Shown in pieces: positions 36,664 through 54,000 of a stretch of DNA of 64,000 bases (within the stretch, counting starts at the first letter, position 1; each line of letters opens with the position of its first letter). The DNA lies in the IMG/VR virus record IMGVR_UViG_3300021964_000012, positions 248,001 through 312,000 of that record; one strand, written 5' to 3'. The notes under the pieces are model-generated. The model did not search any database. It saw only the letters and a program-made list of their open reading frames with translations, and was not told the DNA's origin. The translations under genes were made by a program, and so were the position numbers.

Positions 36664-37103
36664 TAAACGCAGTCGGAGTTTGGTTTTACAGTATTAAAAC
36701 AAATCGATATCTTTATCTACTAAGAAATGACAGTAAGAATCCTGGTTGCTGGGGCCTTCCAGGTGGTAAGGTCGATAACGGAGAGAATTTGCAAGAAGCA
36801 ATGACACGTGAATGCACAGAAGAAATTGGACTATGGCCTGATACAATTAAACTGGTTCCAATTGAAAAATTTACCAGCATTGACAATAAATTTTCTTACC
36901 ATACATTTCTTTGTTTAATAAAAGAAGAATTTACCCCAATATTAAACAGTGAACATCATGGATATTCCTGGATTAAATCAGGAGTTTATCCTAAACCGTT
37001 ACATCCTGGTCTATGGACTACAATTAACTTTCAAGAAATACTTGATAAAATTGAGAGCATTAAACAGTTTCAAATATCACAAAATGAAACAAATTCTCCG
37101 TAG
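36645..37103 (+). CDS. Nudix hydrolase
   Basis: WGLPGGKVDNGENLQEAMTRECTEEIG Nudix box; LNSEHHGYSW. Confidence 0.9.
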   Translation: MEHCALINAVGVWFYSIKTNRYLYLLRNDSKNPGCWGLPGGKVDNGENLQEAMTRECTEEIGLWPDTIKLVPIEKFTSIDNKFSYHTFLCLIKEEFTPILNSEHHGYSWIKSGVYPKPLHPGLWTTINFQEILDKIESIKQFQISQNETNSP

Positions 37104-37759
37104 GTCCAGGTATCAAAATTAATATTTTGTTTCCACACATTGCTCGGTGGAATGTTGTCTGAAACAAATACAAATTTTACATCACGGTACTGACTCATAA
37201 CTTGATTCATCTGGTTAACCAATTGTTCATCAAATTCACCAACACTATTACGTGCATCAGCACCTAATAGAAAAACTTCTTTGTGTCCGTCAAAACACGC
37301 TAGCCACGTAGCAACTGTGAGACTACGTCCTCTTGTTCCATATGGAACTAGATAGAACTCACCAGCGTTAGAAATACAATTTCTTGCATTGCTATACACA
37401 CTTACTTTTTTTTGATAACCTGTTTCTAATAACTCATTGAGTTTTTCTTGATCAAATTCTACATAAAAATCGCATTGCATTTCTTGCCAACAACCTTGAG
37501 AACCATAACTTTGTAATCTCTTACGACCAAGGTGCCATCCGGCATGTCGTTCAATGTTGTTTTTTAAATTAAACTTCCCGTGAAGTTTTGTTGTATATCG
37601 GCTGTCTCCGTTGCCGATTACTGCGGCTCTTCCAGAAATATGTTGATTTTCAATTGGATTATCAATCCATTCACGTTCTTGATGTTTTTTACCATTTTTA
37701 ATAGTGTTACTAACAATAACAAATTCGCCATCATAGTCAGTACGATATCTTTGTAACAT
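37070..37759 (-). CDS. CstII/Maf (DUF115)-fold glycosyltransferase-like protein, divergent copy
   Basis: AAVIGNGDSR; ATWLACFDGHKEVFLLGAD; paralog of 52664..53251. Confidence 0.55.
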   Translation of the reverse strand: MLQRYRTDYDGEFVIVSNTIKNGKKHQEREWIDNPIENQHISGRAAVIGNGDSRYTTKLHGKFNLKNNIERHAGWHLGRKRLQSYGSQGCWQEMQCDFYVEFDQEKLNELLETGYQKKVSVYSNARNCISNAGEFYLVPYGTRGRSLTVATWLACFDGHKEVFLLGADARNSVGEFDEQLVNQMNQVMSQYRDVKFVFVSDNIPPSNVWKQNINFDTWTYGEFVSFCDI

Positions 37760-40497
37760 TATAATCTTCCTACTAGAACTTCTATCACACCTGGACCATC
37801 ATTGTCTTTGTTTTCAATTGCTTTACCGATTACACTACCAGTTGGTGGATTATGAATATCTTTGTATGCTTGTGCATGTCCAGGTTCGTCACTGCTGATC
37901 AACATATCGCCTTTGCGTACGGTTCCAACAACCTTGCATGGTACTCGTCCAATAAGTGCTACACTGATACCATCTAAATCATTGTTCATCAAGTAGGCAG
38001 GATCAGTTGAAACTACACCTGCAATTGCAGTGCTTCTAGACCTACGAGTTTGTGTTACTTCGTATTCGCCTCCAAGTTCAACAACAGTTCCAGGCTCATA
38101 ATCTTGATCACTGGTATATTTTTCTGCCAGGTCAGCATACCTTGCTTGTGTGGCGGTTGCAGTTATCACGCCAGCACTAAAATTGCCCGAACTATCTCTA
38201 GCAACAATGGTGCTAGCTGTATTAGCACTAGTGGCATTACTGGTAATGGTAACACTACCACTAGCACCACCACCTGAAAGTCCTGTTCCACTTACCGCAA
38301 CGTTGGTAATATCACCTACATTAGTGGTATAACCAGCACCATTAGTTAGCTGATTGTTGTTTGTTGGTATATCACTGGTAAGTGCAATAGTACCAGTAGA
38401 GGTTGGTAGTGTTAGTGTTCCGGTATTACTGATTGTGCTAATAACTGGACTGGTAAGTGTTTTATTTGTAAGTGTTTGTGAACCAGTTAGCGTTGCAACT
38501 GTACTGTCAATTGACAAGGTATGTGCAACACCTTCACCTGTGGTTGCTCCACTTGATGATATACCAGTACCGCCAGTAATTGTTCCAACATAGTTGCCTG
38601 TTGTATCTGTACCTAGTGCAACTGAGTTTGCAGCAATAGTAGTTGTAATGCTCGCAGTATCACCTGCACTAGTAAAGGTAGCACTACCAGTAACATCACC
38701 GCTTAGTTGTACGGTCACTGCACTGCTTAATCCACCAGCAGTGCCTGTGGTGTTTTGATTGAGTGTTGCTACACGTGCCGCCGCTACAGTGCCTGTTGAA
38801 ATATTTGATCCATTTAAGGCTGTTAAACTTGCACCACTACCACTAAATGCCGCTGATGTTAACAAACCAGTGCTTGGATTGTACGTTAATCCACTGTCTT
38901 GTTTTACCGCAGTTAAATCACCAGTTGTGGTACTTGCAAAATATAATAAGAAATTGGTATTTGTACTGGTATCTGAACTTACTGTTGCACCGCCTCCGCT
39001 TGCATCAGCAAAACTAAGAGTTCCTGCACCATCAGTAACAAGAACTTGATCAGCAGTACCGTCTGAGGTTGGAAACTTATAGGCATTGTTAAATGTGATA
39101 GCACCACTGTCGTTGCCGTCAATCTTAAACTGTCCGTTATTGCCTGCAGGATCTGCACCTGTGCCATCAGTATCAACAGCAACCGAAAACTGTGTTCTAG
39201 CAGCATTATTTGTATTATCAAAAGCAAACGATCCACCTGTAACCAGTGATGTACCATTGTAATATTCGTGGTTACTTCTAAATAGATAATCACCCGAGTT
39301 GACTGCAAGTGGTGATGCTACTGTGCCTCTGTATCTTCTTGTTCTTATATCTGGAGCGTCAGCACTGTTGTTGTACTGTTCCATACGAATCTGTGCTGTT
39401 TGAGCATCCTCACCTGTCATGTGTAGTGTTACTTCAGGAGATGTTTGATTGATACCAACATAATTACTTGCTGTATCAATGGTTAAAATATCGGTTCCTT
39501 CGATACTTGTATTGTCTGATCCTACAATGAGAATTTCGTTGGCAGTACCAAGTGTAAGCCCAGTAACACCATCCAGCAGGTTAAGTTCAGTGGCTGTTGC
39601 TGTAACTGCCGTACCGCCGATGTAAAGATTCCCAGCATCAACACGCAAATCGTTTGTGACTGTAACATCTTGATTGGTTGCGTCAACAGTAATAGCGGTA
39701 CCATTTTGACCATTAGCAGCAATTTTCAAATCATTTGTAGAAAAAATACGGAAGTTGTCACTGCCATCATTATCAAATGCACCTACATTTGTCATACGCA
39801 AACCAGTGCCACTTTGATCAATTCTTAGTTCGTCAACGCCAGATATGTTACCGCTGGTAAATGATACTGTACCGTCTGTCATAGTACCAAATGTACCAAT
39901 CCCAGCAGTGGTTATGTTGCCGCCTGTGACGTTCCCTGTAGCAGTTACACTCGTAAGTGATGGAGTTAAACTTGGTGTAATTGTAAGTGTGTCTGTTGAT
40001 GCGTTGGTTGTTAGGGCAAGATTTGTACCAGCTACAATAGTAATTGTATCGCCTATAGCATCAGCAACAATACTATCTTCACCGCTTACTGCAACTGTGC
40101 CATAGGCTGCATTACCATTGCGAACAAAAGTCAGTGCAGTTGTGCCAATTGTGATTGGATCATCTGTGGTTAGTTTCCATTGAGTATCAGCATAGGTAGT
40201 ACCTTCGGTGATCATAATGATCATCCCTGCACTAACTTCTCCAGTGGTATCAGCATCCAATGATCGTGCCCAAGTTCCGTTTGATCCTGCACCAACTGTG
40301 GTTACATAGTATATTCCGTTTTCGCTTCCTGTGGATTGACCTGTGACTAGTATTCTATCACGCAGTGCAAGACTTACACCATCTACTGTAGCAGGTGCAC
40401 CTCCACTCAATGTAATGTTTGAAGTGGTTACTGCTCTAGCGGTTTGCTTGTAGTCTATGTCTTGAAGCTGGTGAGCTCTAGGCCGAGTTAATCCCAT
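37759..40497 (-). CDS. Tail fibre/appendage protein with C-terminal intramolecular chaperone (Peptidase G2-like)
   Basis: N-terminal DGV...DRILV.GQ..ENGIY..W.R module; Thr/Gly-rich; C-terminal YADLAEKY...GVVSTDPAYLMN...GRVPCKV...GKAIE. Confidence 0.8.
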   Translation of the reverse strand: MGLTRPRAHQLQDIDYKQTARAVTTSNITLSGGAPATVDGVSLALRDRILVTGQSTGSENGIYYVTTVGAGSNGTWARSLDADTTGEVSAGMIIMITEGTTYADTQWKLTTDDPITIGTTALTFVRNGNAAYGTVAVSGEDSIVADAIGDTITIVAGTNLALTTNASTDTLTITPSLTPSLTSVTATGNVTGGNITTAGIGTFGTMTDGTVSFTSGNISGVDELRIDQSGTGLRMTNVGAFDNDGSDNFRIFSTNDLKIAANGQNGTAITVDATNQDVTVTNDLRVDAGNLYIGGTAVTATATELNLLDGVTGLTLGTANEILIVGSDNTSIEGTDILTIDTASNYVGINQTSPEVTLHMTGEDAQTAQIRMEQYNNSADAPDIRTRRYRGTVASPLAVNSGDYLFRSNHEYYNGTSLVTGGSFAFDNTNNAARTQFSVAVDTDGTGADPAGNNGQFKIDGNDSGAITFNNAYKFPTSDGTADQVLVTDGAGTLSFADASGGGATVSSDTSTNTNFLLYFASTTTGDLTAVKQDSGLTYNPSTGLLTSAAFSGSGASLTALNGSNISTGTVAAARVATLNQNTTGTAGGLSSAVTVQLSGDVTGSATFTSAGDTASITTTIAANSVALGTDTTGNYVGTITGGTGISSSGATTGEGVAHTLSIDSTVATLTGSQTLTNKTLTSPVISTISNTGTLTLPTSTGTIALTSDIPTNNNQLTNGAGYTTNVGDITNVAVSGTGLSGGGASGSVTITSNATSANTASTIVARDSSGNFSAGVITATATQARYADLAEKYTSDQDYEPGTVVELGGEYEVTQTRRSRSTAIAGVVSTDPAYLMNNDLDGISVALIGRVPCKVVGTVRKGDMLISSDEPGHAQAYKDIHNPPTGSVIGKAIENKDNDGPGVIEVLVGRL

Positions 40498-40518
40498 GGT
40501 CTGTCCTTATCTTTGCAG

Positions 40519-40567
40519 TATTTATCTGGATTTTTGATCAAAAAAATAGCACCCAAAGGTGCTATTT
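40519..40567 (-). terminator. Terminator plus late promoter cassette, copy 1
   Basis: AAATAGCACC-TTTG-GGTGCTATTTTTTT (40567..40540) then ATAAATA (40525..40519). Confidence 0.8.
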
Positions 40568-40586
40568 CTAATTTGTTGTTTATGAA

Positions 40587-43500
40587 TTACATCATCATTG
40601 CTAGTACTTCAATAACTGCTTCTCCGCCTGCGTTGGATTCGATTGCTTTACCAATTACTGTACCAATTGCTGGACTGTTGTTAGCCATTGCTCGACCGTT
40701 ACCTGCACTTACCATTAAGTCACCTGCGTTAACAACACCTGTTACTTTACATGGTACTCTACCAGATATTGCTAGTGCAACACCTTCTTGATCCTTATTC
40801 ATCAAGTAGGCTGGATCTGTAGAAACAATACCTGCTACTGCATGATGGTTTGCTTGATTGCATGCGGCAAGTTTACCTTCACCTGCAAAGTGTACAACTG
40901 TGCCTGCTTCAATGTCGCCGTCTGCGGCATACATCTCAGCCAAGTCAGCGTATCGTGCTTGTGTAGCTGTTGCAGTTATTACACCAGCACTGAAATTTCC
41001 ACTACCATCTCTAAACACAATAGTTGAACCAGTGTTTGCGTTTGTAGCATTTGATGTTACAGTAAATGTTCCACCTTCACTGTTTACGCTACCACTTATA
41101 CCACTACCACTTGTAGCACCTTGTTGTACATAGTTTCCAGTTGTATCAGTGCTTAGAGCAACTGAGTTGGCTGCAATAGTTGCTGTTAATGTGGCATCGC
41201 CTAAGTTAGTAAGTGTTGCACTACCTGTCAAGTCTCCAGCTAATGTGATTGTTGGATCTGATGTTGCAGTAGTAGTAATACTTGCTGTATCACCTGCACT
41301 TGTAAATGTTGCACTTCCTGTAACTGCACCAGTCAACGATACTGTTACTGCACTTGATAAACCACCAGCAGTACCTGTTGTGTTTTGGTTAAGTGTTGCC
41401 ACTCTAGCCGCTGCAATTGTTCCTGAGCTTATGTTTGATCCATTAAGTGAGGTTAAACTTGCACCACTACCACTAAACGTTGTGGCTGCTAATACACCTG
41501 TACTACTATTAAAGGTTAAGTTGGAACCTGACTTAGCTCCAAGATCTCCAGTGGCTGCAGTTGCAAATAATGGAAAACAAGTTGTATCACTGCTTTCATC
41601 TGCTACTGTTATTGTTGTTGCAATTGTGGCTGTACCAGTTGTGTCTTGGTTCAGTGTTGCAACTCTAGCTGCTGCAATTGTTCCTGTTGTGACTTGCGAT
41701 CCATTAAGTGCTGTTAATGCAGATCCATCTCCACTAAAGGCTGCACTTGTAAGCGTTCCACTACTTGGATTGTATATCAATCCACTGTCTTGTTTAACAG
41801 CAGTCAATGCACCAGTTGTGGTACTTGCAAAGTATAACAAGAAGTCAGTATCTGTGCTTGTATCTGCACTTACAGTTGCTCCTGCAGCCGCAAAGCTCAA
41901 TGTTCCTGCACCGTCACTTACTAGAGCGTATCCACTTACACCAGCATCTGCTGACGGAAGTGTCCAAACTAGATCACTTGAGACTGTTGTTGGAGCCTGG
42001 AAACCTACATAGTTACTTGCGTCGCCGTCTAGGAATCTTACATCGCCTGTTGTGGCAAAATCACCTGCTACGTTAGCACCAGTTGATATTACAGTTAATG
42101 ACTGTGTACCACCCGAAGTAAGTCTTACATCACCATTGGTTCCTGAAAAGTCTACCGAACTGGTTCCGTTAACAATACTGTCACCAGCAATTTCAACGTT
42201 GGCGTCGATCACACCTGGTGTAGTACCGTCTGGACCAAAAAATCCAACTGCATTTCCGCCTGTGTTTTTAATAACAACGTTACCAAGTGTAATTGTGCTA
42301 CCTGTAAGGTAGAGATCGTTCCAACGCTCTGTTGAACTTCCCAAGTCATAGGTTGCGTTAGCAGTTGGTATAATGTTACCTTTTATTGCAACATCACCGC
42401 CATCTTGAGTGGTCACACTTGAAGTAGTATCATCTGATTCAAGTGCTAAGATTGTTGAAGTGGTTGTGATTTCTCTTACTTCAATTGTATCACCTGCAAG
42501 AGGTGCTTCAGTAAATGTTAGTGTTGTTCCACTTACAGCATATGCAGTTGTTGGTTCTTGTACCACACCGTTTATGCTTACAATACAACTTGCAGTTGTT
42601 TGAGTACTACCTAGTGTAAATGCTGTTGTGCTGTTATCACCTGAGAATGTTTCACTTGCAATAACTGTAAAGTCACTACCAGCAGTTGTCCAACTATCTG
42701 AATCATAGAATTCAAATTGATCAAGTGTGGAATTGAAACGTATCATACCAGTAACACCTGTTGGACGTTGTGCAGTTGTACCAACTGGAATCATCTGTGA
42801 ATCAGTTGAGTCAACTTTAAATGTTACACCTGTCGTAGTAGTTGCACTACCAACAACAATTGTGTCTGTACCAGCATCAATTGTTAGTAGGTTTGCATTT
42901 GAACTACCTTCAACAATAAAGTCTACATCTTGTGCATCTTGGTTAACAGTTATTGCAGTACCTGCTGATGTAATATCATCTGTTGCAATTGTTATGTTAC
43001 CAGTTTTAAGATTTGCACCAGTTACATCGCCTGTGGCATCTACTGCACCAGCTGTAGTAATGTTACCGCCTGCAACATTACCTGTAGCAGTAATAGTTGT
43101 ACCAGCTGTAATCCCATTTGTTATATCAGCATTGTCTGCAGCTACTTGACCAGCAGTGGTTAGATTGCCACCTGCAACATTACCTGTTGCAGTTATTGTT
43201 GAGCCTGAACTAATAAGTCCAGTAGCTTCCATTGCACCACCTGTTGTGATGTTTCCACCACTTACGTTACCAGTTGCAGTTATTGTTGTACTTGCCGTAA
43301 TAGCACCTGTAACAGCCGCAGTTGATCCGTCAAATGTAAAGTTTCCACTATCTTCAATTGCACCAGCAGTACCTGCTAATACAACACGACCACTTGTCAG
43401 ATCACTTACAACAGCACTTGCTAATGTAGCTTCGCCTGTGGTATTAATAGTGGCACTGTCCATAGCGTTTGCAGTTGTTAAGTTACCACCACTTACATTA

Positions 43501-46469
43501 CCTGTTGCAGTAATAGTTGTACCAGCTGTAATGCCATTTGTTATATCAGCATTGTCTGCGGCTACTTGTCCAGCAGTTGTTAAGTTACCACCTACAACAT
43601 TACCTGTTGCAGTAATAGTTGTACCAGCTGTAATGCCATTTGTTATATCAGCATTGTCTGCAGCCACTTGTCCAGCAGTGGTTAAGTTACCACCAGCTAC
43701 GTTTCCTGTTGCAGTAATAGTTGTACTTGCAGTTATTGCACCTGTGACCGCGGCAGTTGAACCGTCAAATGTAAAGTTTCCACTGTCTTCGATAGCACCA
43801 CTTGTCCCTGCTAGTACAACACGACCTGCGGTCAAGTCACTTACTATTGCACTTGCTAGAGTTGCTTCACCAGTGGTGTTGATAGTAGCACTGTCCATAG
43901 CATTAGCAGTGGTTAGGTTGCCACCAGTTACGTTACCAGTTGCAGTGATAGTTGATCCTGAACTAATTAATCCAGTTGCAACTACTGCACCACCTGTGTT
44001 TAGGTTACCGCCGGTTACATTACCAGTTACAACTGCAACACCCGAAAAGTTTGAACTTACACCGTCTACGTTTCCTGTGACTGTTAAGCTATCACCGTTG
44101 GCAACACCAATATTTGGTGTGGTTAGGTTAGCACTTGTCTTCACAACAACTGCATCACCAACTATAGCAGTGGTTACATCATCAACGTTAACACTTAATG
44201 TGTCACCAGTTTTGGTTAAACCATCACCAGCAGTAATACCTCCAGCACCTGAGAACTGTGTAAAGTTAATTTCAGTTGTGCCCATAGTTACCGGAGCATT
44301 TGTTGTACAAACAAAACCTGCATCAGCGTTAGTAGAACCTTCTTCAATAAATGTGAAACCTCCTGGAATTTCTCCACTTGGTGAACCTTGATCAAAATCA
44401 GTTGCTCTTGTTAATACGAAAGGATTTGAACCATCACCTACTGTGGTTACAACATAGATACCATTTTGTAAAGCAGCAGCTTGGTTTTGAACAAGCACTC
44501 TTTCGTCAGCAACAAGTGTTACGCCATCTATTGCGGCCAATGCTCCATTTGCGTCAGCAGTTAATGTAGCACCAACACCTGATGTACCATTATCGTATGT
44601 CACTGCCGGTAATGCACCTGTTGTTGCAGCCACACATGATCCTTTAATATCAAGACCTTCAGCAACTGAATCAACATATGATTTATTGGCAGCATCGCCA
44701 TCAGCAGTTGGAGTAGCAAGTTGAATAATTTTTGCGTTACTTGCATCAATAGAACCAGTTCCGTTTGGATCAAGTATAATATTTTGATTTGTACCTGTTG
44801 ATTGTATTGTTGGGTTAGCACCTTGGAATGTTGCTGAAGTAATGGTTAAACCTGAGATGTCACCGCTTGCATCAATGTCGCCACCAGTGGTTAAGTTGCC
44901 ACCTGATACATTTCCAGTTGCAGTTACAATACCACCTGTGTTTATGTTTCCACCAGTTACGTTACCAGTTGCAGTTAGTGTTGTACTAAATGAACCTGAT
45001 GTAGCACCTGTAATTGCACCTGAGTTGATACTTGCAGTACCATCTGTTAGAGTTCCACCTGTAACAGTTCCACTAAACGTTCCTGATGTAGCACCAGTAA
45101 TAGCACCTGAGTTAATACTTGCAGTACCATCAGTTAATGTACCGCCTGTAATTGTGCCTGACCCTGTGATATTGGTTGCACCTGTGATTGCTCCACTGCT
45201 TATACTTGCAGTGCCATCAGTAAGTGTGCCACCAGTAACTGTTCCACTGAATGTTCCTGATGTAGCACCAGTAATAGCACCAGAACTGATTGTAGCAGTT
45301 CCGTCTGTTAACGATCCACCTTCTACTGCACCACTGAATGTAGCGGCAACACCACTTGTTATTGAACCATCATCAATTGTTAATACGCCATCAGTGATTG
45401 CACCAGCAGTAACTATGTTTCCACCTGTAATATTTCCTGTAGCAGTAATACTTGCGGCTTGAAATGTACCTGCGGTGATTAAGTTACCACCTGTAATATT
45501 TCCTGTTGCCACAACCTGGCCAGCTGTAGTTAAGTTGCCACCACTTACGTTACCTGTTGCAACAATAGTAGTTCCGGCTGTTATGCCATTTGTAGCGTCT
45601 AGGTTATCTGCCTGTACTTGACCGCTAGTTGTTACATTACCACCACTTACGTTTCCAGTAGCAGTTATAGTTGTTCCGGCAGTAATGCCATTTGTAGCAT
45701 CTACGTTATCAGCTTGTACCTGTCCAGCAGTTGTAACATTGCCTCCTGAAACATTACCTGTTGCAACAATAGTGGTTCCGGCTGTAATTCCGTTAGTAGC
45801 ATCAACATTGTCTGCTTGTACCTGGCCAGCAGTGGTTACATTTCCACCAGCTACGTTTCCAGTTGCAGTGATTGTAGTTCCGGCTGTTATGCCATTTGTT
45901 ATATCAGCATTGTCACCAGCAACTTGACCTGCAGTAGTCAAGTTCCCACCACTTACGTTACCAGTTGCAGTTACAGTTGTACCAGCAGTGATTGATGTGC
46001 CAGCTTCAATTGTGCTTGAAGCATTCAATGCTGTTGTTACGTTACCTGATGGTGCTAAGTCGACCATTGTGATATCAGCAACTCTTGCATCTGCATAACT
46101 TGATAGTGTGATAGTGTTGGCACTGCCATCTGCTGATGTAAATCCAGCAGCAAATTGGTCGTTTGCCTCATCCCATATCCATGCTATGTTTGTATCATCT
46201 CCACGTTCTCCTACAAATCCTATGTCAACTGCTGCAGAGCCAGTTTGATCTTTTGCTAGTAGAAGTATTGGATCTTCAATGATTGTGTTGACTGTATCAA
46301 GTGTTGTACTTGTACCGTTAACTGTTAAGTTTCCTGTGATAGTAAGGTTACTACCATAGTTTAAGTTATTTGCTAACTTGCCAGCTGAAATACTATTATC
46401 TTGTAATTTCGAACTAGCTACAATGGTAGCGTCTGTAATTTGGTTGTTTGCAATTCTGGTTAATGCCAT
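40587..46469 (-). CDS. Very long tail fibre protein (1960 aa) with C-terminal intramolecular chaperone
   Basis: TATGNV.GGNL repeats; DGV...ERVLV.NQ...NGIYVV module; GTTAQRP..GMIRFN module; YADLAEMY C-terminal domain. Confidence 0.85.
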   Translation of the reverse strand: MALTRIANNQITDATIVASSKLQDNSISAGKLANNLNYGSNLTITGNLTVNGTSTTLDTVNTIIEDPILLLAKDQTGSAAVDIGFVGERGDDTNIAWIWDEANDQFAAGFTSADGSANTITLSSYADARVADITMVDLAPSGNVTTALNASSTIEAGTSITAGTTVTATGNVSGGNLTTAGQVAGDNADITNGITAGTTITATGNVAGGNVTTAGQVQADNVDATNGITAGTTIVATGNVSGGNVTTAGQVQADNVDATNGITAGTTITATGNVSGGNVTTSGQVQADNLDATNGITAGTTIVATGNVSGGNLTTAGQVVATGNITGGNLITAGTFQAASITATGNITGGNIVTAGAITDGVLTIDDGSITSGVAATFSGAVEGGSLTDGTATISSGAITGATSGTFSGTVTGGTLTDGTASISSGAITGATNITGSGTITGGTLTDGTASINSGAITGATSGTFSGTVTGGTLTDGTASINSGAITGATSGSFSTTLTATGNVTGGNINTGGIVTATGNVSGGNLTTGGDIDASGDISGLTITSATFQGANPTIQSTGTNQNIILDPNGTGSIDASNAKIIQLATPTADGDAANKSYVDSVAEGLDIKGSCVAATTGALPAVTYDNGTSGVGATLTADANGALAAIDGVTLVADERVLVQNQAAALQNGIYVVTTVGDGSNPFVLTRATDFDQGSPSGEIPGGFTFIEEGSTNADAGFVCTTNAPVTMGTTEINFTQFSGAGGITAGDGLTKTGDTLSVNVDDVTTAIVGDAVVVKTSANLTTPNIGVANGDSLTVTGNVDGVSSNFSGVAVVTGNVTGGNLNTGGAVVATGLISSGSTITATGNVTGGNLTTANAMDSATINTTGEATLASAIVSDLTAGRVVLAGTSGAIEDSGNFTFDGSTAAVTGAITASTTITATGNVAGGNLTTAGQVAADNADITNGITAGTTITATGNVVGGNLTTAGQVAADNADITNGITAGTTITATGNVSGGNLTTANAMDSATINTTGEATLASAVVSDLTSGRVVLAGTAGAIEDSGNFTFDGSTAAVTGAITASTTITATGNVSGGNITTGGAMEATGLISSGSTITATGNVAGGNLTTAGQVAADNADITNGITAGTTITATGNVAGGNITTAGAVDATGDVTGANLKTGNITIATDDITSAGTAITVNQDAQDVDFIVEGSSNANLLTIDAGTDTIVVGSATTTTGVTFKVDSTDSQMIPVGTTAQRPTGVTGMIRFNSTLDQFEFYDSDSWTTAGSDFTVIASETFSGDNSTTAFTLGSTQTTASCIVSINGVVQEPTTAYAVSGTTLTFTEAPLAGDTIEVREITTTSTILALESDDTTSSVTTQDGGDVAIKGNIIPTANATYDLGSSTERWNDLYLTGSTITLGNVVIKNTGGNAVGFFGPDGTTPGVIDANVEIAGDSIVNGTSSVDFSGTNGDVRLTSGGTQSLTVISTGANVAGDFATTGDVRFLDGDASNYVGFQAPTTVSSDLVWTLPSADAGVSGYALVSDGAGTLSFAAAGATVSADTSTDTDFLLYFASTTTGALTAVKQDSGLIYNPSSGTLTSAAFSGDGSALTALNGSQVTTGTIAAARVATLNQDTTGTATIATTITVADESSDTTCFPLFATAATGDLGAKSGSNLTFNSSTGVLAATTFSGSGASLTSLNGSNISSGTIAAARVATLNQNTTGTAGGLSSAVTVSLTGAVTGSATFTSAGDTASITTTATSDPTITLAGDLTGSATLTNLGDATLTATIAANSVALSTDTTGNYVQQGATSGSGISGSVNSEGGTFTVTSNATNANTGSTIVFRDGSGNFSAGVITATATQARYADLAEMYAADGDIEAGTVVHFAGEGKLAACNQANHHAVAGIVSTDPAYLMNKDQEGVALAISGRVPCKVTGVVNAGDLMVSAGNGRAMANNSPAIGTVIGKAIESNAGGEAVIEVLAMMM
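43030..43945 (-). repeat. In-frame coding repeats in the long fibre (approx. 34-aa units and a duplicated approx. 110-aa block)
   Basis: TATGNV.GGNLTTAGQVAADNADITNGITAGTTI repeated; NAMDSATINTTGEATLASA..SDLT.GRVVLAGT.GAIEDSGNFTFDG twice. Boundaries approximate. Confidence 0.85.
44990..45330 (-). repeat. In-frame DGTASI.SGAITGATSG.FSGTVTGGTLT repeats
   Basis: Four to five imperfect copies in the protein; boundaries approximate. Confidence 0.8.
45540..45975 (-). repeat. In-frame tandem approx. 34-aa (102-nt) repeats
   Basis: ATGNV.GGN.TT.GQV..DN.D.TNGITAGTTI about four times; boundaries approximate. Confidence 0.8.
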
Positions 46470-46530
46470 TTTGTACTGTATCCTTTACTTCAGAAACCCG
46501 TTAGAAGTTTTAATCAATCTCTTATGATAA

Positions 46531-46537
46531 TATTTAT
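46531..46537 (-). promoter_or_regulatory. Late promoter ATAAATA for the long fibre
   Basis: Intergenic motif upstream of an AAGGA SD. Confidence 0.55.
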
Positions 46538-46589
46538 CTAGGGGTGCGATTTTCAACAACCGTGGTTTACAGTGCTTTTATAATAGATT

Positions 46590-47861
46590 TTAGGTGGCAG
46601 AAATTGTACCATCAAAGCGTACTTGTTGCCAGTTTGAACCGTTGTATACGGCCAAACAAGGTGCCCCTCCATTACCATTACTAACATAAATTATCTGTCC
46701 AGCAGACGTATTTGTAAGTGCATTTGCTTCAGTTACAGTGTACGTTGGTAGTTGTAGACTATGAATAGTTGAGAACTGTGCAATTCCGTTGGTGTCTACT
46801 GTAATAGAATTACCCGTTCCGTTTGTAATAGAAGTCACAGTTGTGGTTGCAGTAATCTGCCTTACTTCAATAGCATCTCCACTTGCCGGTGCTTCAGTAA
46901 AAGTAAGTGTTGTACCACTTACAGAATAAGCAGTTGTAGGTGCTTGAACTGTACCATTTATGCTTACAATAACACTTGCAGTGGTTGCACTGGTGCTTAA
47001 TGTAAATGCAACAGTGCTATTGTCTCCTGAGAAGGTCTGACTAGTAATTGTTGTTGTATCTTGGCCAACAGTTTCCCATCCTGTGCCATTGTAGACTTCA
47101 ACAGCAGTTTCTGAGGTGTTAAAACGTAAATCACCAGTAGATGGAGATACAGGACGTTGTGCAGTATTACCAACTGCAATCTGCAGTGCAGTTGTTGTGT
47201 CAATGTTAACAGTTCCGTTTCCGGTGACTTCTAATACTATATCGCTTCCTGCATTACTAGTACCAACTGTTGTATCTGTAACAGTCAAATTTCCAATTGT
47301 TGATCCACCACCTACACCAAAAGGCCCAATGTATCTTGCTCCAACAATGTAAATTGACTTGCCTGTAACACCTGTTCCTATTTGACTAGGAATATTATCG
47401 CCATTAAAGTTTAGTACACCTGCTTGATAATCAAAAAACCATCCATCTTCATTTCCACTACCTGCTTGGAATAACTGTGTACCTGTGCTCTGTGGGCTGG
47501 CTGCACCAGCATCATCTACATAAACTTTAACCAAATAGGTTGATCCAAATTCAGTCGGAATCCAATCTGTTAAATTGGTTTTCCAGGTTTGGTTATCCGG
47601 AGCAGTTAGATCCTCGGTGGTTTCCACTGTAGCACTACCTCCAGCGGCATCTTGGTATATTTCAACAATACTGCTAGAAGAACTTGGTTTAACACCTGGT
47701 ATTGATGCTGAGCTCTGCCATACTTTGTCTGCCCGCATTAATAATGGAGATGCAATACTCTCGTTGAATGCTTCCTTGTTGGCAGGAGGTGCAGTTTTTG
47801 CAACTCCAAAACCAAGTTTTTTCCATAAAAAGTCTACTTTAGTGCTATCTGCTAGTGCCAT
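46590..47861 (-). CDS. Putative tail/baseplate-associated structural protein
   Basis: 423 aa; shares GNTAQRP..GDLRFN and FSGDNST.AFTL...QAPTTAY.VSGTTLTFTEAP modules with the long fibre. Confidence 0.7.
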   Translation of the reverse strand: MALADSTKVDFLWKKLGFGVAKTAPPANKEAFNESIASPLLMRADKVWQSSASIPGVKPSSSSSIVEIYQDAAGGSATVETTEDLTAPDNQTWKTNLTDWIPTEFGSTYLVKVYVDDAGAASPQSTGTQLFQAGSGNEDGWFFDYQAGVLNFNGDNIPSQIGTGVTGKSIYIVGARYIGPFGVGGGSTIGNLTVTDTTVGTSNAGSDIVLEVTGNGTVNIDTTTALQIAVGNTAQRPVSPSTGDLRFNTSETAVEVYNGTGWETVGQDTTTITSQTFSGDNSTVAFTLSTSATTASVIVSINGTVQAPTTAYSVSGTTLTFTEAPASGDAIEVRQITATTTVTSITNGTGNSITVDTNGIAQFSTIHSLQLPTYTVTEANALTNTSAGQIIYVSNGNGGAPCLAVYNGSNWQQVRFDGTISAT

Positions 47862-50800
47862 TAGCTTGCTACTCCTACACTAACACTGGTTAGTGTTTCG
47901 CCACTTGCTAGTGCTATACGCACAAGTATGTTGTTTCCTGTAGCGTTTGAACTGTTTGCACTTCCTAGTGTCATGGTATAGGCTGCATTTATACTTGTGC
48001 CTGTTGGAATTACATCAGCACCAGTTAAGGCACATCCGTTACTGCCATTACCACCGTTGCCTGTATCAGCACCAGGCACACCAGAACCAGCATATTGAAT
48101 TGTTCCATCAACCCATCCATTTATTGTACTAGCACTATCAATTGCAGTGCCTGGAGAGGCAATCCACAATCCAGTTATTCCAGTACTACTGTTCAAACTG
48201 ATGTCAAAGTTAGCAACAGTTGCCCTTCTAAAGGCAAAAGTAAAATATTGTGTTCCAGATCTACCTGTGTTCAAATCAGGACCTGCTGGCAGATAACCAC
48301 TGCTTAAATCAGTAGTAAAATGACTAAGAGTACCCCAACGCACAACTGCTTCACTTGTACCAGCAATGGTTTCCGCTCCAGTCCACACATTTCCTGTATA
48401 CCAATCTTGATCTGCAAAGGTTGGATTGTCGGCAGCACTTCCTAATCCTTCAATTCTCAAACCATCGTCATCGTACACACTTCCAAGAGAATCACTGACT
48501 GGTATGTTTCCTTCGTCAAATCCTGACAAACTAGCACTATAAATCTGTATGTACTTGTCTGTCACATTAACAATTGAACTAGATCCATTAACATTAAACA
48601 TCTGACTGTCTAGATAGCCGACTGCTCTTGCACTGCCATTTATACTAAGTGTGATGTTTCCTAATTGTTGCGGAGATGCTACTCCAACATCAGCATCAAC
48701 TATGCCAGCAGTAACAAAACTTGGAGTACCGTCGATATCACCATAGGTTTTGGTTTGAGTTCCAATAATACTACCAGTGGTGCTTTCTGCTAAGGTACCA
48801 GTTGTAAATTGTATTGGTTGAGTTGTGTTTCTATATGTTTGTCCTGTGAGATTCGATACTTCTAAACCTGTAATAGTAACTGCCGGAGAGCCTGTATTGT
48901 AATATGGAACTCCTGAAATATATCTATAGGTTCCTGCAGTTTGTTCTGCAATAGTTGCGTTTCCTTGCACAACTGTCGGAACGTCTGTCATGTCATCTTT
49001 AACAAAGTCTACTAGATTAGTATCACCAGCAGTTGTATGACTAAGTTTTGCATCGTTATAACCTACACTTATACCGCTTAGAGCACGTTGCCAACGTGCA
49101 TCAAAAACTTTTGCAAATCCTGTTGGATAGGTACTTGCACTTATTTCATCGTGTGCATCACCATCGTTTACAACTATAAGATCTGTATAGGTACCTGCAG
49201 CATCTCCGTCTGGAGTAAAAGTTACATTACCAGCTTCACTGCCGTTGAACACTGCTGATAAATTTCCTGAAATAGCAGTATTAGCATCAGTAATATTGTT
49301 TGTGTTGATTGTTGTAGTTGTGGTATATCTAGTGACACTACTACCTGCGGAAACTATGTTTCCGCCACTGTTATCAGTTGCATTAGCTGCCAATAATGGA
49401 CTTGTGCCTTGGCTTGCGTCTTGCAAACTAAGAGTCTTTCCGCTTAGTGCAGTTGGTGCAGTCGGGTTTGCATTAATTGTAATATAATTTGTTTTTGTTT
49501 CTGTATCTGTTTGTGCAATACTTACAGGAGTTCCTGATGATGTAAGAACAACTGTAAAACTACTAACAGTTCCATAACTGTTTGTAATATTTGCGGCTCC
49601 TGGTGTTCCTGCACCACTTGTGATGTTTCCTGTGGTATTACCATCACCAAATGTAAAATTTGTTGTTGTAACGTTCTGACTTGTATTTTGAAATGTAACT
49701 AGACCTCTGTCAGTTGTGGACAAGCCTGTTCTATAATCTGTGAACAAATATCCATCTTGTGCAGTATCACCTGTTTTATCACTGGTAATCACTGTTGTTC
49801 CAGTAAAAATACTGCGTATATCTGGTTCAACTGTAATTGTTATATTTCCAGCATTAAAAGGACTGTTGGTGCTTCCGTTTTCTGTGGCTAGTTGTACTTC
49901 AAAAGTTTGTGCAGTTCCGCTTGATTGGTTTCCGCTGTCTAATGCAAAAGTATGATTGATTGGTGTACCAGGGTTACCCGCAACACCAGTTTGAATATTT
50001 ACAGCATTAACGTTTCCGTCACCCCAGGTCCAACGATATTTTTGTTGTGAGCCAAATACTGCGGTTGTTCCCGGATCTGTTGCAGTACTGTTTGTAAATT
50101 GTACTACACCACCTGATGTAGCTTCTTCATTAACCACTGTTGTTACGTTAGCACTTGACAATGAAGTATGATCACTGAAAACGTCTACAACACCTGGCGA
50201 GCTATACACAGTAACTGGACTAGGCCCAGCAGTATTTGATGTTCCTGCTAACACAATTGAATACTGTGCATCTCCACCTGCGTTGGTATAGGTATTGGTA
50301 AGTGTTGTCCACCCAAGACTTGGATTAACATTTGCGGCACCGTCACCCCAATCCAGTTCGTAACTAGAAGTAACATTGGTAGATGTGTTGGTAATTTCAG
50401 CGGCAGTTCCGCTATCTATAGTGCTATCAGTTATTGTAAAACTTGGTGCAGGCGTAGGTGTGTAAAGTGTTATATAATTTGTACGAGTCTTTGAATCAAC
50501 AGATCCTTTTGCACCTAAACTTACATTGCCTTCGTAGGTTCCATCTGGATTGAAAGCAGTAAAAGTTACAGTAAATTGTCCACCATCTGTGTTAGCATAG
50601 GTATTTGTTGGATTTTGTGATGTACTGGTGTTGCCGTCTCCAAAATCCCAAAGATATGAGGTCGCATTTCCAATAAATGTTCCAGTGAAATCAACGTCCA
50701 TTGGACTAGGACCAGCCAATGGTGTTCCTGTGAAATCTGCTTGTCCAACAAAGGTGCCGTTAGCAATATTTAAACTAACTTGATTTAGATCATCTAATCC

Positions 50801-51247
50801 ATCAGTGACAACTGTGTTTGCTGTCCAGCCATCGTAGGCAACATTTGATGTTAGGTCACCATCTGTTGGCGTACCAATTTGTATAGTATTACCAAGCAGA
50901 GCATCTACGTTTGCACTATCAACCCAACTTAATGATCCTGAACCATCTGTTGATAGTATTTGTCCTGATGTGCCTCCAGTTAATATAACTGCACTGTTTG
51001 CACCAAGATTAACATTACTTCCACTGAGATCTAGATTACCTTCAGCACTGATAGCATTTCCTGCAATCGAAATATTTGCAATATTACTGCTTCCAGCTAC
51101 GTCTAGTGTAACTGTTGGTGTATTACTACCTATACCAACTCGATTGTTAGTAACATCCACAAAGAAAGTGTTTGTGTCAATGGCTAGGTTAGCAGTTCTT
51201 TCTAAATTATCTGCGAGTGCTTTACCAGAGACTCTTGCAATTGCCAT
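47861..51247 (-). CDS. PKD/Ig-like repeat structural protein (1128 aa)
   Basis: WDFGDGN, LDWGDGA, WTWGDGN, FTFGDGN: four PKD-type signatures; ATAAATA at 51279..51273. Confidence 0.8.
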   Translation of the reverse strand: MAIARVSGKALADNLERTANLAIDTNTFFVDVTNNRVGIGSNTPTVTLDVAGSSNIANISIAGNAISAEGNLDLSGSNVNLGANSAVILTGGTSGQILSTDGSGSLSWVDSANVDALLGNTIQIGTPTDGDLTSNVAYDGWTANTVVTDGLDDLNQVSLNIANGTFVGQADFTGTPLAGPSPMDVDFTGTFIGNATSYLWDFGDGNTSTSQNPTNTYANTDGGQFTVTFTAFNPDGTYEGNVSLGAKGSVDSKTRTNYITLYTPTPAPSFTITDSTIDSGTAAEITNTSTNVTSSYELDWGDGAANVNPSLGWTTLTNTYTNAGGDAQYSIVLAGTSNTAGPSPVTVYSSPGVVDVFSDHTSLSSANVTTVVNEEATSGGVVQFTNSTATDPGTTAVFGSQQKYRWTWGDGNVNAVNIQTGVAGNPGTPINHTFALDSGNQSSGTAQTFEVQLATENGSTNSPFNAGNITITVEPDIRSIFTGTTVITSDKTGDTAQDGYLFTDYRTGLSTTDRGLVTFQNTSQNVTTTNFTFGDGNTTGNITSGAGTPGAANITNSYGTVSSFTVVLTSSGTPVSIAQTDTETKTNYITINANPTAPTALSGKTLSLQDASQGTSPLLAANATDNSGGNIVSAGSSVTRYTTTTTINTNNITDANTAISGNLSAVFNGSEAGNVTFTPDGDAAGTYTDLIVVNDGDAHDEISASTYPTGFAKVFDARWQRALSGISVGYNDAKLSHTTAGDTNLVDFVKDDMTDVPTVVQGNATIAEQTAGTYRYISGVPYYNTGSPAVTITGLEVSNLTGQTYRNTTQPIQFTTGTLAESTTGSIIGTQTKTYGDIDGTPSFVTAGIVDADVGVASPQQLGNITLSINGSARAVGYLDSQMFNVNGSSSIVNVTDKYIQIYSASLSGFDEGNIPVSDSLGSVYDDDGLRIEGLGSAADNPTFADQDWYTGNVWTGAETIAGTSEAVVRWGTLSHFTTDLSSGYLPAGPDLNTGRSGTQYFTFAFRRATVANFDISLNSSTGITGLWIASPGTAIDSASTINGWVDGTIQYAGSGVPGADTGNGGNGSNGCALTGADVIPTGTSINAAYTMTLGSANSSNATGNNILVRIALASGETLTSVSVGVAS

Positions 51248-51286
51248 CTATTAATTTCCTTAAACTTTGCAGTATTTATCGCACTG

Positions 51287-51700
51287 TTAAGGTGTGTTGC
51301 CGAGTCCGTGAATTACGTTGATTGGTTCATTAAGTAAAGGAGCTTCTGTAAAAGTAATGTCATTTCCGCCACCGGTAATGCTGTAGGTAGATGGTTGTTG
51401 ATATATATTTGAAATGAACACAATAGCTTGATCAGCGGCACTTACACTTGTGCTGAGAGTAAATGAAAGTGTACTATTATCACCTGTAAAGTTATCAACA
51501 GTAATATCAGCTTCACCACTTTTTGCAACTTGTTGAAACACAGTGCCGTCAAAATATTCCATACTTCCTGTACTGGTATTATATCTAAATACTCCAAATA
51601 CAGGATCATTTGGTCGCTCGGCAGTAGCACCAAAAGGAATTCTGATGCTAGAGGAACCTGAAGGGATTTCTCTATTTTTTAGAAAAACTCCGGTTGCCAT
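51287..51700 (-). CDS. Small structural protein
   Basis: Consists almost entirely of the GATAERP..GVFRYN and FTGDNST..FTL..TFTEAP modules. Confidence 0.7.
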   Translation of the reverse strand: MATGVFLKNREIPSGSSSIRIPFGATAERPNDPVFGVFRYNTSTGSMEYFDGTVFQQVAKSGEADITVDNFTGDNSTLSFTLSTSVSAADQAIVFISNIYQQPSTYSITGGGNDITFTEAPLLNEPINVIHGLGNTP

Positions 51701-51701
51701 A

Positions 51702-52016
51702 TTAGATACTCGTAAATGAAGTTACAGAATTTACTCCACTTGCAACGTTTGCAGTAACTTGTACAGTATCTCCGTTTTCGAGTAAAAGTTTTTCTCCACC
51801 CGAGTACAATTGATAAGAATCAGTTGCTGCAATGTCTAGAGTCTTTGCTACTAAGTTTATGTTACCAACACTGTCGCCACTTGGAACGATGTGTATATCG
51901 ACGTTTACTGCGGCTGCGGTTGCATTTGTTAATGCAAGATAGGTAATTGCAGTATTATTGGTACTTGTATATACTGTTGTTGCACTGTTACTAACGTTTG
52001 CGGTTTGTATTGCCAT
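51702..52016 (-). CDS. Small beta-rich structural protein
   Basis: 104 aa; LLLENGDTVQV motif; AAGGA SD. Confidence 0.65.
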   Translation of the reverse strand: MAIQTANVSNSATTVYTSTNNTAITYLALTNATAAAVNVDIHIVPSGDSVGNINLVAKTLDIAATDSYQLYSGGEKLLLENGDTVQVTANVASGVNSVTSFTSI

Positions 52017-52025
52017 TTTAGTTCC

Positions 52026-52667
52026 TTAAAATATAATTCCAAAAACAATTGCTTTGCTTTTGCTTACTAGTTCATCTGCAGTTGATCCATCTACAAAATA
52101 AACACCTGTTCCGCCACTGCCTGCTACGTTTCCGTAAAGTACGGTAGTATTTGCAACTGAACCAGGAGTTGCAGTGTCTGCTAATTGTAAACCTGCAGTA
52201 AGATTAACGTTTCCTGCAATATTTAATTGATTGGTATCAGTAAATGTTAAATTTGCACTTGCACCAAAGTTTCCTTCATTGTTGAATTGTACTTGTGTGT
52301 TTGCTCCTGCAACACTTCCTGCTGCAGCAGTTCCAATTTCATCCCACGTACCTGTTTCACCAGTTTCGCTAGTGCTGGTACTTAATTCCCATTTGTTATC
52401 TGTTGTATTATATCTAATACCTGCAAAAGTTGATGCAGTTTTATGAGTAAGTAAACCTGCATTACTAGCATATGTTGCGGTATTACTACTATTAGTTACA
52501 ATAAACGGATCTTTAACATCAAGTACTTCAGTGTTAATATAGGTTATATTTCCACTTACAACTAGGTTTCCATCAACTTCCATCGTATTGGTATTGATGT
52601 ACACCCTATCTGCAGTGTTTATGGTTTCAATGTAGTAATCGCCGTCGATTCTTTTTTTAGTATTCAT
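52026..52667 (-). CDS. Putative fibre-associated structural protein
   Basis: 213 aa, beta-repeat composition, AGSVAGANTQVQFNNEG motif. Confidence 0.65.
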   Translation of the reverse strand: MNTKKRIDGDYYIETINTADRVYINTNTMEVDGNLVVSGNITYINTEVLDVKDPFIVTNSSNTATYASNAGLLTHKTASTFAGIRYNTTDNKWELSTSTSETGETGTWDEIGTAAAGSVAGANTQVQFNNEGNFGASANLTFTDTNQLNIAGNVNLTAGLQLADTATPGSVANTTVLYGNVAGSGGTGVYFVDGSTADELVSKSKAIVFGIIF

Positions 52668-53251
52668 AATGGACCTCTACGTGTATTTACCATTTCAAGA
52701 AACTTGTCCATTGACTGAATATTCATATTAGGCAAACTGTTAAATTGTTTTACAAAAGCACTTTCGGGTCCTTCAATTCTTGTAAAATTTACATTATCAA
52801 ATTCTTTTGCAAGTTCTAGCAGTTGCCTTACCCAGTTTCCCGAAAATGTAGGAGGCTCTAGTTGTTTTTTGTAAAATTCTGTGTCTACATACACATTGTT
52901 AAACATACCATTGGTTGTTCCAAGATCAAATCCTACTAGAAATATTTCAGTATGACCATCAAGACATGCAAGTGCAGTTGCATTTGGACCGCTACTATAT
53001 CCTTTGTATTTGTTTTGTAAAGGTTGAGCACCTAAACCTGGAATTGGTTTTCGTGTATGAAATCGATACTGTTTTGAATAACCACTGTTTTGTATTGCTT
53101 CAGCAATTGGTCTATCAGTGGCAACTAAACAATCAGGAACAAATGTACGGTACAATGCATTGCAACCATAGATTTTTCCTTGAGACTTCAAAACGTTAAG
53201 ATCAACAACAAGTCGACTTTTACCATTTCCAATTATAAATGCAGTACTCAT
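52664..53251 (-). CDS. CstII/Maf (DUF115)-fold glycosyltransferase-like protein
   Basis: AFIIGNGKSR..D...YGCNALY..PD.LVATD and SSG..A..LA...GH.EIFLVGFD align by eye with Campylobacter CstII IIAGNGPS...FRCNQFY and TSG...GYKEIYLSGID. Confidence 0.65.
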   Translation of the reverse strand: MSTAFIIGNGKSRLVVDLNVLKSQGKIYGCNALYRTFVPDCLVATDRPIAEAIQNSGYSKQYRFHTRKPIPGLGAQPLQNKYKGYSSGPNATALACLDGHTEIFLVGFDLGTTNGMFNNVYVDTEFYKKQLEPPTFSGNWVRQLLELAKEFDNVNFTRIEGPESAFVKQFNSLPNMNIQSMDKFLEMVNTRRGPL

Positions 53252-53288
53252 AAAAAACCCTCACTGTACTTAATACAGTAAGGGTTTT
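53252..53288 (-). terminator. Terminator-like hairpin containing a late promoter and the SD of the next gene
   Basis: 15-bp stem AAAACCCTTACTGTA-TTAAG-TACAGTGAGGGTTTT then TT-ATG; TAAGTA spans the loop. Confidence 0.65.
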
Positions 53289-53307
53289 GGTAGTTAAAAA
53301 GTATCTA

Positions 53308-54000
53308 TTAACCTAATGAGGCGTTCTCAACTTGTACTAGATCCATGGTTGCAGGAGAAGCAGAACTACCTGATCCACCAACAGCAACTGTGTCATCTAG
53401 AATGTTAAAAAAGTTAATCAATCTTACATTACCACTGAAGTCCACTGAACGTCTACCGCCCATTAGTCTTTCAATACGTACTGCACTTGAACCTTCGTCT
53501 GTGTATGTTATAGTCATACTACCTGTTGATAAAGCAGCATCAGCTTCGTTTGCAAGTGTACAAATTCCACACTCAGCAGCCGTACCTGAAGTACCGGCAC
53601 CAGCGGCTGCAGTTACAGTAAAAATATGTCCTGCGGCAATTGTTCCTTTACCTGCACCCATTGCTTCCCAGTCGGTATCACCAACTGAAACCACTCTTAG
53701 TACACTGCCAACCACTGCATTTGCAGGGTCAATAGCGGCAGCATCTAATCTTGATACTTGGTACTTTCTTGCACCTTTTTGCTTGATTATAAAACCATCA
53801 CCTTCGGTTGTTACACTTCCACCAGTTGGTCGAATACGACATGTCATTACTGGAAATGTGTAGTCACTGGTGTTAGGATTTCCACCTACTGCACCATAGA
53901 ATAATTCACCAGAAGGTGTTCTTGCGGCACTGTCGTCTCCTGGATTGTTAAAACCAGCATCCTGTGTATCAGATATTTTTATTTTAAGAGGTCTACCCAT
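53308..54000 (-). CDS. Putative capsid-associated (decoration/vertex) protein
   Basis: Directly downstream of gp23 with its own late promoter and AAGGAG SD; function inferred from position only. Confidence 0.5.
   Translation of the reverse strand: MGRPLKIKISDTQDAGFNNPGDDSAARTPSGELFYGAVGGNPNTSDYTFPVMTCRIRPTGGSVTTEGDGFIIKQKGARKYQVSRLDAAAIDPANAVVGSVLRVVSVGDTDWEAMGAGKGTIAAGHIFTVTAAAGAGTSGTAAECGICTLANEADAALSTGSMTITYTDEGSSAVRIERLMGGRRSVDFSGNVRLINFFNILDDTVAVGGSGSSASPATMDLVQVENASLG

Follow-up and report, generated by a model that had tools for sequence, protein, structure and literature searches.

Single-domain paralogs of a predicted Maf/GT42-superfamily family at both ends of the fibre-gene block of a T4-like jumbo phage

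The locus and its conserved arrangement

The stretch of DNA analysed here, termed the window, consists of 64,000 nucleotides at positions 248,001-312,000 of the 328,292-bp IMG/VR virus record IMGVR_UViG_3300021964_000012, which has direct terminal repeats. It contains two open reading frames (ORFs), ORF-A and ORF-B, which encode predicted Maf/GT42-superfamily proteins and lie at the two ends of a block of fibre genes. The features of this region are listed in Table 1. An earlier note on this DNA had claimed that these two ORFs are paralogs with shared motifs, placed before and after the fibre genes in the same orientation, and both claims hold. The two frames are open, and their products share 28% identity over 138 residues (BLASTP, E 2e-10). 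Comparison of the alignments of their families by hhalign gives a probability of 99.3% (E 9.5e-21, 164 columns). The motif IIGNGKSR of ORF-A corresponds to VIGNGDSR of ORF-B, and the second quoted motif is ATALACLDGHTEIFLVGFD in ORF-A and ATWLACFDGHKEVFLLGAD in ORF-B. ORF-A, ORF-B and the genes from p213 to fib912 are all encoded on the minus strand. The record is that of a T4-like jumbo phage, because it carries a gp23-type capsid gene, which is adjoined in relatives by portal, prohead-protease and scaffold homologs. Nearly all sequences related to these were recovered from marine and salt-marsh metagenomes.

Table 1. Features at and around ORF-A and ORF-B (positions are those of the window unless stated otherwise)
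Feature	Position	Strand	Remark
gp23-type major capsid protein	54140..55342	minus	anchor for the T4-like identification
ATAAATA, late-promoter-like motif	54079..54085	minus	between gp23 and p230
p230, Gly/Ala-rich ORF	53308..54000	minus	directly upstream of ORF-A
ATAGATA	53302..53308	minus	one mismatch to the late motif; probably what was taken for a promoter in the earlier note
Terminator-like hairpin and T6	53252..53288	minus	ends at the ORF-A ATG; stem CCCTTACTGTA / TACAGTGAGGG, loop TTAAG
ORF-A, 195 aa	52664..53251	minus	single-domain protein, predicted Maf/GT42/DUF115 superfamily
p213 (213 aa)	52026..52667	minus	ATGA overlap between its start and the stop of ORF-A
p104 and p137, small ORFs	51287..52016	minus	PHROGs hit by p137 carry the annotation tail fibre / baseplate wedge
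PKD-1128, 1128-aa protein	47861..51247	minus	PKD domain; ATAAATA ahead at 51273
fib423, 423-aa fibre-like protein	46590..47861	minus	match to T7 tail-fibre N-terminal domain
fib1960, fibre protein	40587..46469	minus	rich in 34-residue repeats; ATAAATA ahead at 46531
fib912, tail-fibre protein	37759..40497	minus	last fibre gene; ATAAATA ahead at 40519
C-terminal domain (~146 aa) of fib912, common to fib1960	37762-38199 and 40590-41021	minus	motif ARYADLAE...GRVPCKV...
ORF-B, 229 aa	37070..37759	minus	diverged paralog; one base common to its ATG and the stop of fib912 (TAATG)
NUDIX hydrolase gene	36645..37103	plus	convergent with ORF-B; overlaps its 3' end by 34 nt
ATAAATA sites	11988, 15387, 16545, 25394, 28806, 31551, 40519	minus
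Further ATAAATA sites	46531, 51273, 54079, 58343, 60125, 62700	minus
Sugar-modifying gene sets	genome, about 26-32 kb, 37-49 kb, 94-97 kb		not in the window

The arrangement around the two ORFs was compared in two sets of 80 IMG/VR loci, one with ORF-A relatives of 52-100% identity and the other with ORF-B relatives of 45-98% identity. The p230 gene is directly upstream of the ORF-A relative in 70 of the 71 assessable loci, and the p213 gene is directly downstream of it in 67 of 68. The ORF-B relative is accompanied by the convergent NUDIX gene in all 80 loci, and is directly preceded by a fibre gene ending in the ~146-aa C-terminal domain in 60 of 63. Ten contigs are present in both sets, and all of them have the same order, with a distance of 12-21 kb from ORF-A to ORF-B, down to 60% (ORF-A) and 45% (ORF-B) identity. 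These counts, together with the ten shared contigs, indicate that the bracket formed by ORF-A and ORF-B is a stable feature of this lineage, although gene order is generally retained in lineages of this kind. The overlap of the NUDIX gene with ORF-B is mostly 9-27 nt in related loci, as measured from the ends of tblastn alignments. Homologs of the gene beyond the NUDIX gene are annotated as gp15-like in related contigs.

Synteny with fibre genes, which the earlier note had named as a check, is kept in this lineage, but members of the family occupy other positions in distant T4-like phages: after gp23, after the portal gene, in replication regions and near the UvdE endonuclease gene. Among deposited phage genomes, megablast with the ORF-A and ORF-B regions gave no match; by tblastn, relatives of ORF-A were detected only in Pelagibacter phages, and none was detected for ORF-B. 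In Pelagibacter phage Mosig, the family gene lies between a gp59-like gene and gp32. Pelagibacter phage HTVC008M (KC465899.1) has three paralogs at 752-1309, 4180-4983 and 77489-78319, all annotated as hypothetical. The first extends over the start of a gene for a putative carbamoyltransferase, and of the others one lies by gp32 and one between uvsY and uvsW. These varied positions indicate that the link to fibre genes is lineage-specific. Genes for DegT and a carbamoyltransferase are found within a few genes of a family member in phage L098, and those for a 4,6-dehydratase/epimerase and a GT8 glycosyltransferase in phage L095. The three independent sugar-gene neighbourhoods of L098, L095 and HTVC008M favour a carbohydrate role. 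When genome contigs were searched with a closer set of sequences, all 20 matches were on contigs of metagenome-assembled genomes that share T4-like phage genes. The family appears to be phage-restricted, because all 20 contigs read as mis-binned phage DNA. No account of this phage family was found in the literature.

Fold and motifs of the two paralogs

The AlphaFold models of ORF-A and ORF-B are confident, with predicted local distance difference test (pLDDT) scores of 87 and 79, respectively. Their top Foldseek matches in the PDB are GT42 sialyltransferases, Maf and MptE, to which the Swiss-Prot models add WaaZ 3-deoxy-D-manno-octulosonate (Kdo) transferases and plant sialyltransferase-like proteins. 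The best structural match to ORF-A is Maf, which covers the whole model, whereas MptE and thiamine pyrophosphokinase (ThiPPK) cover only residues 1-160. ORF-A matches PHROG 30607 (unknown) with an E value of 4.5e-28 and PHROG 4603 ('alpha-2,3-sialyltransferase') with one of 2.4e-5. A HMMER search of 1.84 billion representatives at E<=0.001 gives 1,426 clusters at 50% identity, mostly of 180-210 aa. In the PDB, a family profile of ORF-A, built from 78 representatives of 28-55% identity, finds GT42 structures and no others (E 1e-8 to 7.5e-7); neither the MptE structure 8sd5 nor the Maf structure 5mu5 appears at E<=10. An MptE best match, which the earlier note had named as evidence against its proposal, was therefore not found. 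PF06002 (CST-I) matches neither ORF-A nor ORF-B, and only 3 of the 78 representatives match it, below the threshold. A 435-aa member (P0246) passes the threshold of PF01973, and the family therefore bridges to DUF115. Judged from these comparisons, both ORFs are assigned to a large, phage-restricted family of minimal proteins (~190-240 aa) within the superfamily of Maf, GT42 (CstI/CstII), DUF115 (MptE-like) and WaaZ proteins.

The cytidine monophosphate (CMP)-binding motifs of GT42, GNGxS, CN, (T/S)SG and GxD, are all present in ORF-A, whereas CN and SSG are not conserved in ORF-B. The GNGxS, CN, SSG and GxD motifs of ORF-A align to residues 8-12, 30-31, 131-133 and 152-154 of CstII, and are under purifying selection across the 78 representatives. 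The invariant residues of the family, G8, N9, G10, R13, C30, N31, G88, G107, D109 and Y127, are all kept by ORF-A; S12, Y34, L42, D46, A91, N118, N119, Y121 and N175 are nearly invariant. Like CstI/CstII (1ro7, 2p2v) and the Pasteurella sialyltransferase 9c08, the family has donor-site motifs, a single Rossmann domain (modified GT-A) and a flexible lid after GxD. Residues 110-137 of ORF-A, which follow GxD, are poorly modelled yet strongly conserved. They resemble the CstII lid, which becomes ordered on the substrate. Asp46 of the family appears to replace Asn51 of GT42 at an equivalent strand-end position. Tyr121 and Tyr127, which are six residues apart as are Tyr156 and Tyr162 of CstII, might stand in for these tyrosines.

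Maf flagellin transferases (PDB 5mu5, with a central Maf_flag10/DUF115 domain) are proteins of about 600 aa with flagellin-binding flanks and are encoded at flagellin/nonulosonate loci. In contrast, the phage proteins are bare catalytic domains below the threshold of PF01973, with no nonulosonate genes nearby. The N- and C-terminal acceptor-binding domains that flank the central domain of Maf are absent from ORF-A and ORF-B, each of which has one domain, and 5mu5 aligns only over its residues about 265-518. The catalytic residues of Maf are E324 and D415 in MmMaf and D257, D272 and S334 in CbMaf (bioRxiv 10.1101/2020.06.03.131540). The ORF-A family keeps Asp46, Asp109 and Ser87, which would be candidate counterparts. 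The CstII/Maf-like fold named in the earlier note is supported, as are the donor-site motifs in ORF-A, but the family is neither GT42 nor Maf proper, since the catalytic residues of CstII are not conserved, the flanks of Maf are missing and both ORFs stay below the Pfam thresholds.

ORF-B is degenerate. Three elements are kept in its family: GxGxSR, the A..LA.FDGH.E.FL.G.D stretch and an Asp that corresponds to D46. The Asn of GNG is variable in this family (N/S/H/C/A), CN is replaced by variable residues and SSG is gone. The lid is deleted in the 229-aa type found in the window, and is retained in 240-aa members with an NNxY motif. ORF-B also has a conserved N-terminal beta extension of 44 residues, which aligns to Maf, MptE and SteA as well. 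The ORF-B profile alone gives only noise against the PDB. Two working transferases, as first suggested, are unlikely, because ORF-B has lost most of the family-invariant residues, including CN and SSG, as well as the lid. We consider it quite probable that ORF-B is catalytically impaired. A third paralog of 181 aa, still more degenerate, lies outside the window at genome positions 182,460-183,005 (minus strand). It matches the family profile with an hhalign probability of 95.7%, and keeps only GFD, without GNG, CN and SSG. Its gene overlaps the stop of a 416-aa ORF, for which no match was found, and is situated upstream of a gene for the UvdE endonuclease. UvdE is also close to a 325-aa member of the family on a different contig. 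The family is accordingly a minimal, phage-only, multi-copy branch with enzyme-like and degenerate paralogs within a known superfamily.

The predicted terminator before ORF-A and the fibre proteins

The hairpin before ORF-A has a stem of 11 bp. This hairpin and the T-run before the ATG are kept in 22 of 22 sampled relatives, with compensatory changes in the stem, and the sole Shine-Dalgarno-like sequence before ORF-A, GAGG, sits in the 3' arm of the hairpin. This element resembles an attenuating terminator, conserved and placed behind the p230 gene. The late-promoter motif that had been reported before ORF-A was not confirmed: only ATAGATA is found, and it is kept in 4 of the 22 relatives. ATAAATA occurs in the window in 13 copies on the minus strand and one on the plus strand. 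Most of these copies stand a short way upstream of genes for late structural proteins; there are sites before the portal gene and before the genes for fib912, fib1960, the PKD protein and p230. ATAAATA is probably the late-promoter core of this phage. The T4 late octamer TATAAATA occurs once in the window, which is below chance expectation, and a sigma-70 scan gives only the background level. For p230, and by way of read-through for ORF-A, the closest candidate promoter upstream is the copy of ATAAATA between gp23 and p230.

Word depth of contigs in four metatranscriptome runs is hundreds to thousands for gp23, ~30-190 for p230 and ~0-15 for ORF-A and p213, although depth of assembled contigs is a poor measure of expression and relatives are mixed in. 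The depth in the RNA libraries drops about 10-100-fold across positions 53252-53288. This step is consistent with a terminator and with low read-through expression of ORF-A. As had been claimed, ORF-A overlaps the next gene, by the ATGA shared with p213, but p213, which has no family match, is only a putative structural gene. For p230, p213 and p104, Pfam and PHROG gave no match and the Atlas none of use.

The fibre proteins contain 25-27% Ser plus Thr (15-18% Thr), as compared with 8-18% Ser plus Thr in neighbouring genes. The fibres are rich in Thr and Ser, as described in the earlier note, but this composition does not signal glycosylation. The Thr-richness of fib1960 comes from 34-residue repeats of the type ITATGNVxGGNxTTAGQV, which are typical of fibre shafts, and Thr-richness as a glycosylation signal was rejected as a product of such repeats rather than of mucin-like tracts. 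The fib1960 gene contains tandem DNA repeats at 43471-43726, 44881-45281 and 45514-45971, with units of 102, 87 and 51 bp; the 102-bp units encode the 34-residue repeats. The length of the fibres differs among relatives, as seen from the distance between ORF-A and ORF-B, which suggests that it varies through the repeats. The C-terminal domain shared by fib912 and fib1960 has a weak signature of the Peptidase_G2 intramolecular chaperone in 5 of 18 members (best E 2e-6). This signature suggests that the fibres may mature by self-cleavage.

Proposed function and alternatives

We propose, with a probability of roughly 0.4 for the explanation as a whole, that ORF-A is a transferase that acts on virion proteins and that ORF-B is its partner. 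The mechanism that we infer, with its activity, donor, acceptor and role for ORF-B, is as follows. ORF-A would be a soluble, active, nucleotide-sugar-dependent glycosyltransferase, made late and at a low level by read-through of the conserved terminator that follows p230, a strongly expressed gene. Its likeliest donor, to judge from all characterised transferases of this fold, would be a CMP-activated 2-keto-3-deoxy acid sugar, either CMP-Kdo or a nonulosonate. This donor would be drawn from the host pool, because the phage is without CMP-sugar genes of its own. Gram-negative hosts make CMP-Kdo for the synthesis of lipopolysaccharide (LPS). Maf enzymes can O-glycosylate Ser/Thr of flagellin with Kdo from the CMP-Kdo pool of E. 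coli (bioRxiv 10.1101/2020.06.03.131540). The best guess for the acceptors would be Ser/Thr residues of the cytoplasmic virion surface proteins encoded nearby, from p213 to the fibres. ORF-B, whose translation is tied to that of the last fibre protein, would probably be non-catalytic and serve as a partner that binds the acceptor, as an adaptor or in assembly. The balance tips slightly towards ORF-A being a glycosyltransferase, and it is doubtful that virion proteins are its acceptors. Virion glycosylation is plausible but unproven. There is a precedent for phage glycosyltransferase genes among structural genes with virion proteins as acceptors in mycobacteriophages, which have glycosylated virions (Freeman et al. 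2023, as cited in PMC12619734), and another in chloroviruses. These systems have other glycosyltransferase families, hosts and sugars, and their glycans were detected by mass spectrometry, whereas virion glycans of the present phage are hypothetical.

Several observations weigh against this explanation. Neither ORF-A nor ORF-B passes any Pfam threshold, and the match of ORF-A to PF01973 ('MptE-like') is sub-threshold (E 0.056). The general base His188, Tyr156 and Arg129 of CstII are not conserved in the family, falling on the non-conserved Ser137, Gly111 and Gly84 in the hidden Markov model alignment, in which the lid is uncertain, and none of the His residues is invariant among the 78 representatives. 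The fold is common to the pyrophosphokinases MptE and ThiPPK and to the non-enzymatic regulator SteA. CMP-sugar synthetase (PF02348), NeuB (PF03102) and KdsA were not found in the 328-kb genome. The sugar genes that the phage does have lie more than 200 kb from the window, and the sugars they make belong to another class. Thr-richness is a structural trait of the fibres, and the family is not linked to fibres in pelagiphages and other T4-like phages. Of what the earlier note put forward, the fold and the paralogy stand, two transferases that glycosylate the fibres are only partly supported, and virion glycosylation is a hypothesis.

Among the sugar genes of the genome are three for NAD-dependent enzymes of the 4,6-dehydratase/epimerase type. 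Others encode an aminotransferase (DegT), a carbamoyltransferase of the NodU/CmcH type and a methyltransferase (FkbM), and there are also radical-SAM/SPASM proteins and a weak match to GT1. The linkage to genes for nonulosonate biosynthesis or activation that is typical of Maf was not found in the 328-kb genome. Since CMP-sugar synthetase, NeuB and KdsA were not found, we discarded the idea that the phage encodes a full nonulosonate or Kdo pathway.

ORF-A may instead glycosylate a glycolipid of the host envelope or the LPS core at the cytoplasmic face, which could mask receptors or change the surface late in infection, and would not act on virion proteins. The closest characterised single-domain relatives, CstI/II, the Pasteurella enzyme 9c08 and WaaZ, target lipooligosaccharide (LOS) or LPS cores, and the acceptors of GT42 are LOS glycans. 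The nearest named neighbours in the Atlas include bacterial clusters of MptE-like and WaaZ_KDO_III proteins, and the family members of pelagiphages lie outside structural modules. However, the gene is located within late head/fibre operons here and in several other lineages, and is translationally coupled to late ORFs. Late and low expression would leave only a short time for remodelling of the outer membrane, and neither a membrane anchor nor a signal sequence is evident in the ORF-A model. We regard this alternative, the main one for the acceptor, as unlikely.

A nucleotide-dependent pyrophosphokinase or kinase of small molecules, of the MptE or thiamine-pyrophosphokinase type, is a less probable identity for ORF-A. 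By homology alone, a kinase keeps a small probability. Against the kinase, Maf matches the whole model and the kinases only its first 160 residues; the alignment with the archaeal 6-hydroxymethyl-7,8-dihydropterin pyrophosphokinase MptE (8sd5) and thiamine pyrophosphokinases is shorter, at 110-146 residues. The deep profile finds only GT42 chains, without 8sd5. MptE would be recognised by PF01973 above its threshold together with a pterin context, and neither is found. Dihydropteroate synthase (DHPS) and FolB were not found in the 328-kb genome, which has no pterin or thiamine pathway context, and the neighbours in other phages are sugar-modifying enzymes rather than pterin or thiamine genes.

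The least probable of these alternatives is that neither ORF is an enzyme and that both are fibre chaperones or minor virion components retaining a Rossmann-like fold. SteA has this fold without enzymatic activity, the donor-binding motifs are lost in ORF-B, and ORF-B, which overlaps the end of the last fibre gene by one base, comes directly behind it in 60 of 63 loci, at the classic spot for fibre assembly or adhesin genes; the third, degenerate paralog likewise directly follows and overlaps the 416-aa ORF. Nevertheless, the invariance of GNGxS, CN, SSG and GxD across the 78 diverse representatives is hard to explain without ligand binding, the conserved terminator and sequestered ribosome-binding site fit a low, enzyme-like dosage, and the fibres have a chaperone-like C-terminal domain of their own.

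The position of ORF-B bears on its proposed role as a non-catalytic partner. T4 gp38 and lambda Tfa are fibre assembly/adhesin proteins encoded after the distal fibre gene. ORF-B resembles them in its place right behind the last fibre gene and in its translational coupling, but its fold is unrelated. There is less need for ORF-B as a folding chaperone, given that the two long fibres each carry the Peptidase_G2-like domain at their end. A more specific form of the explanation for ORF-A and ORF-B is bipartite O-glycosylation of virions in abundant marine T4-like phages, cultured pelagiphages among them, in which ORF-A would be the enzyme that decorates fibre or other virion surface proteins from the CMP-Kdo or nonulosonate pool of the host and the dead ORF-B and third copies would be adaptors or lectin-like proteins in a gp38-type position; this form is improbable.

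If ORF-A decorates fibres with acidic sugars, this decoration would be a widespread trait of marine T4-like phages, including pelagiphages, spread over ~1,400 clusters, and would bear on how hosts are recognised in the ocean, on the stickiness of particles and on grazing or immune-like recognition there. ORF-A would then be the smallest known Maf-type protein glycosyltransferase, with a possible use in glyco-engineering, and would form with ORF-B, within one operon for phage morphogenesis, a pair of enzyme and pseudoenzyme paralogs. Even without activity of ORF-A on virion proteins, the family makes up a large branch of the DUF115 superfamily that has yet to be characterised. HTVC008M and Mosig are cultured carriers of the family, and HTVC008M offers a tractable system for its function.

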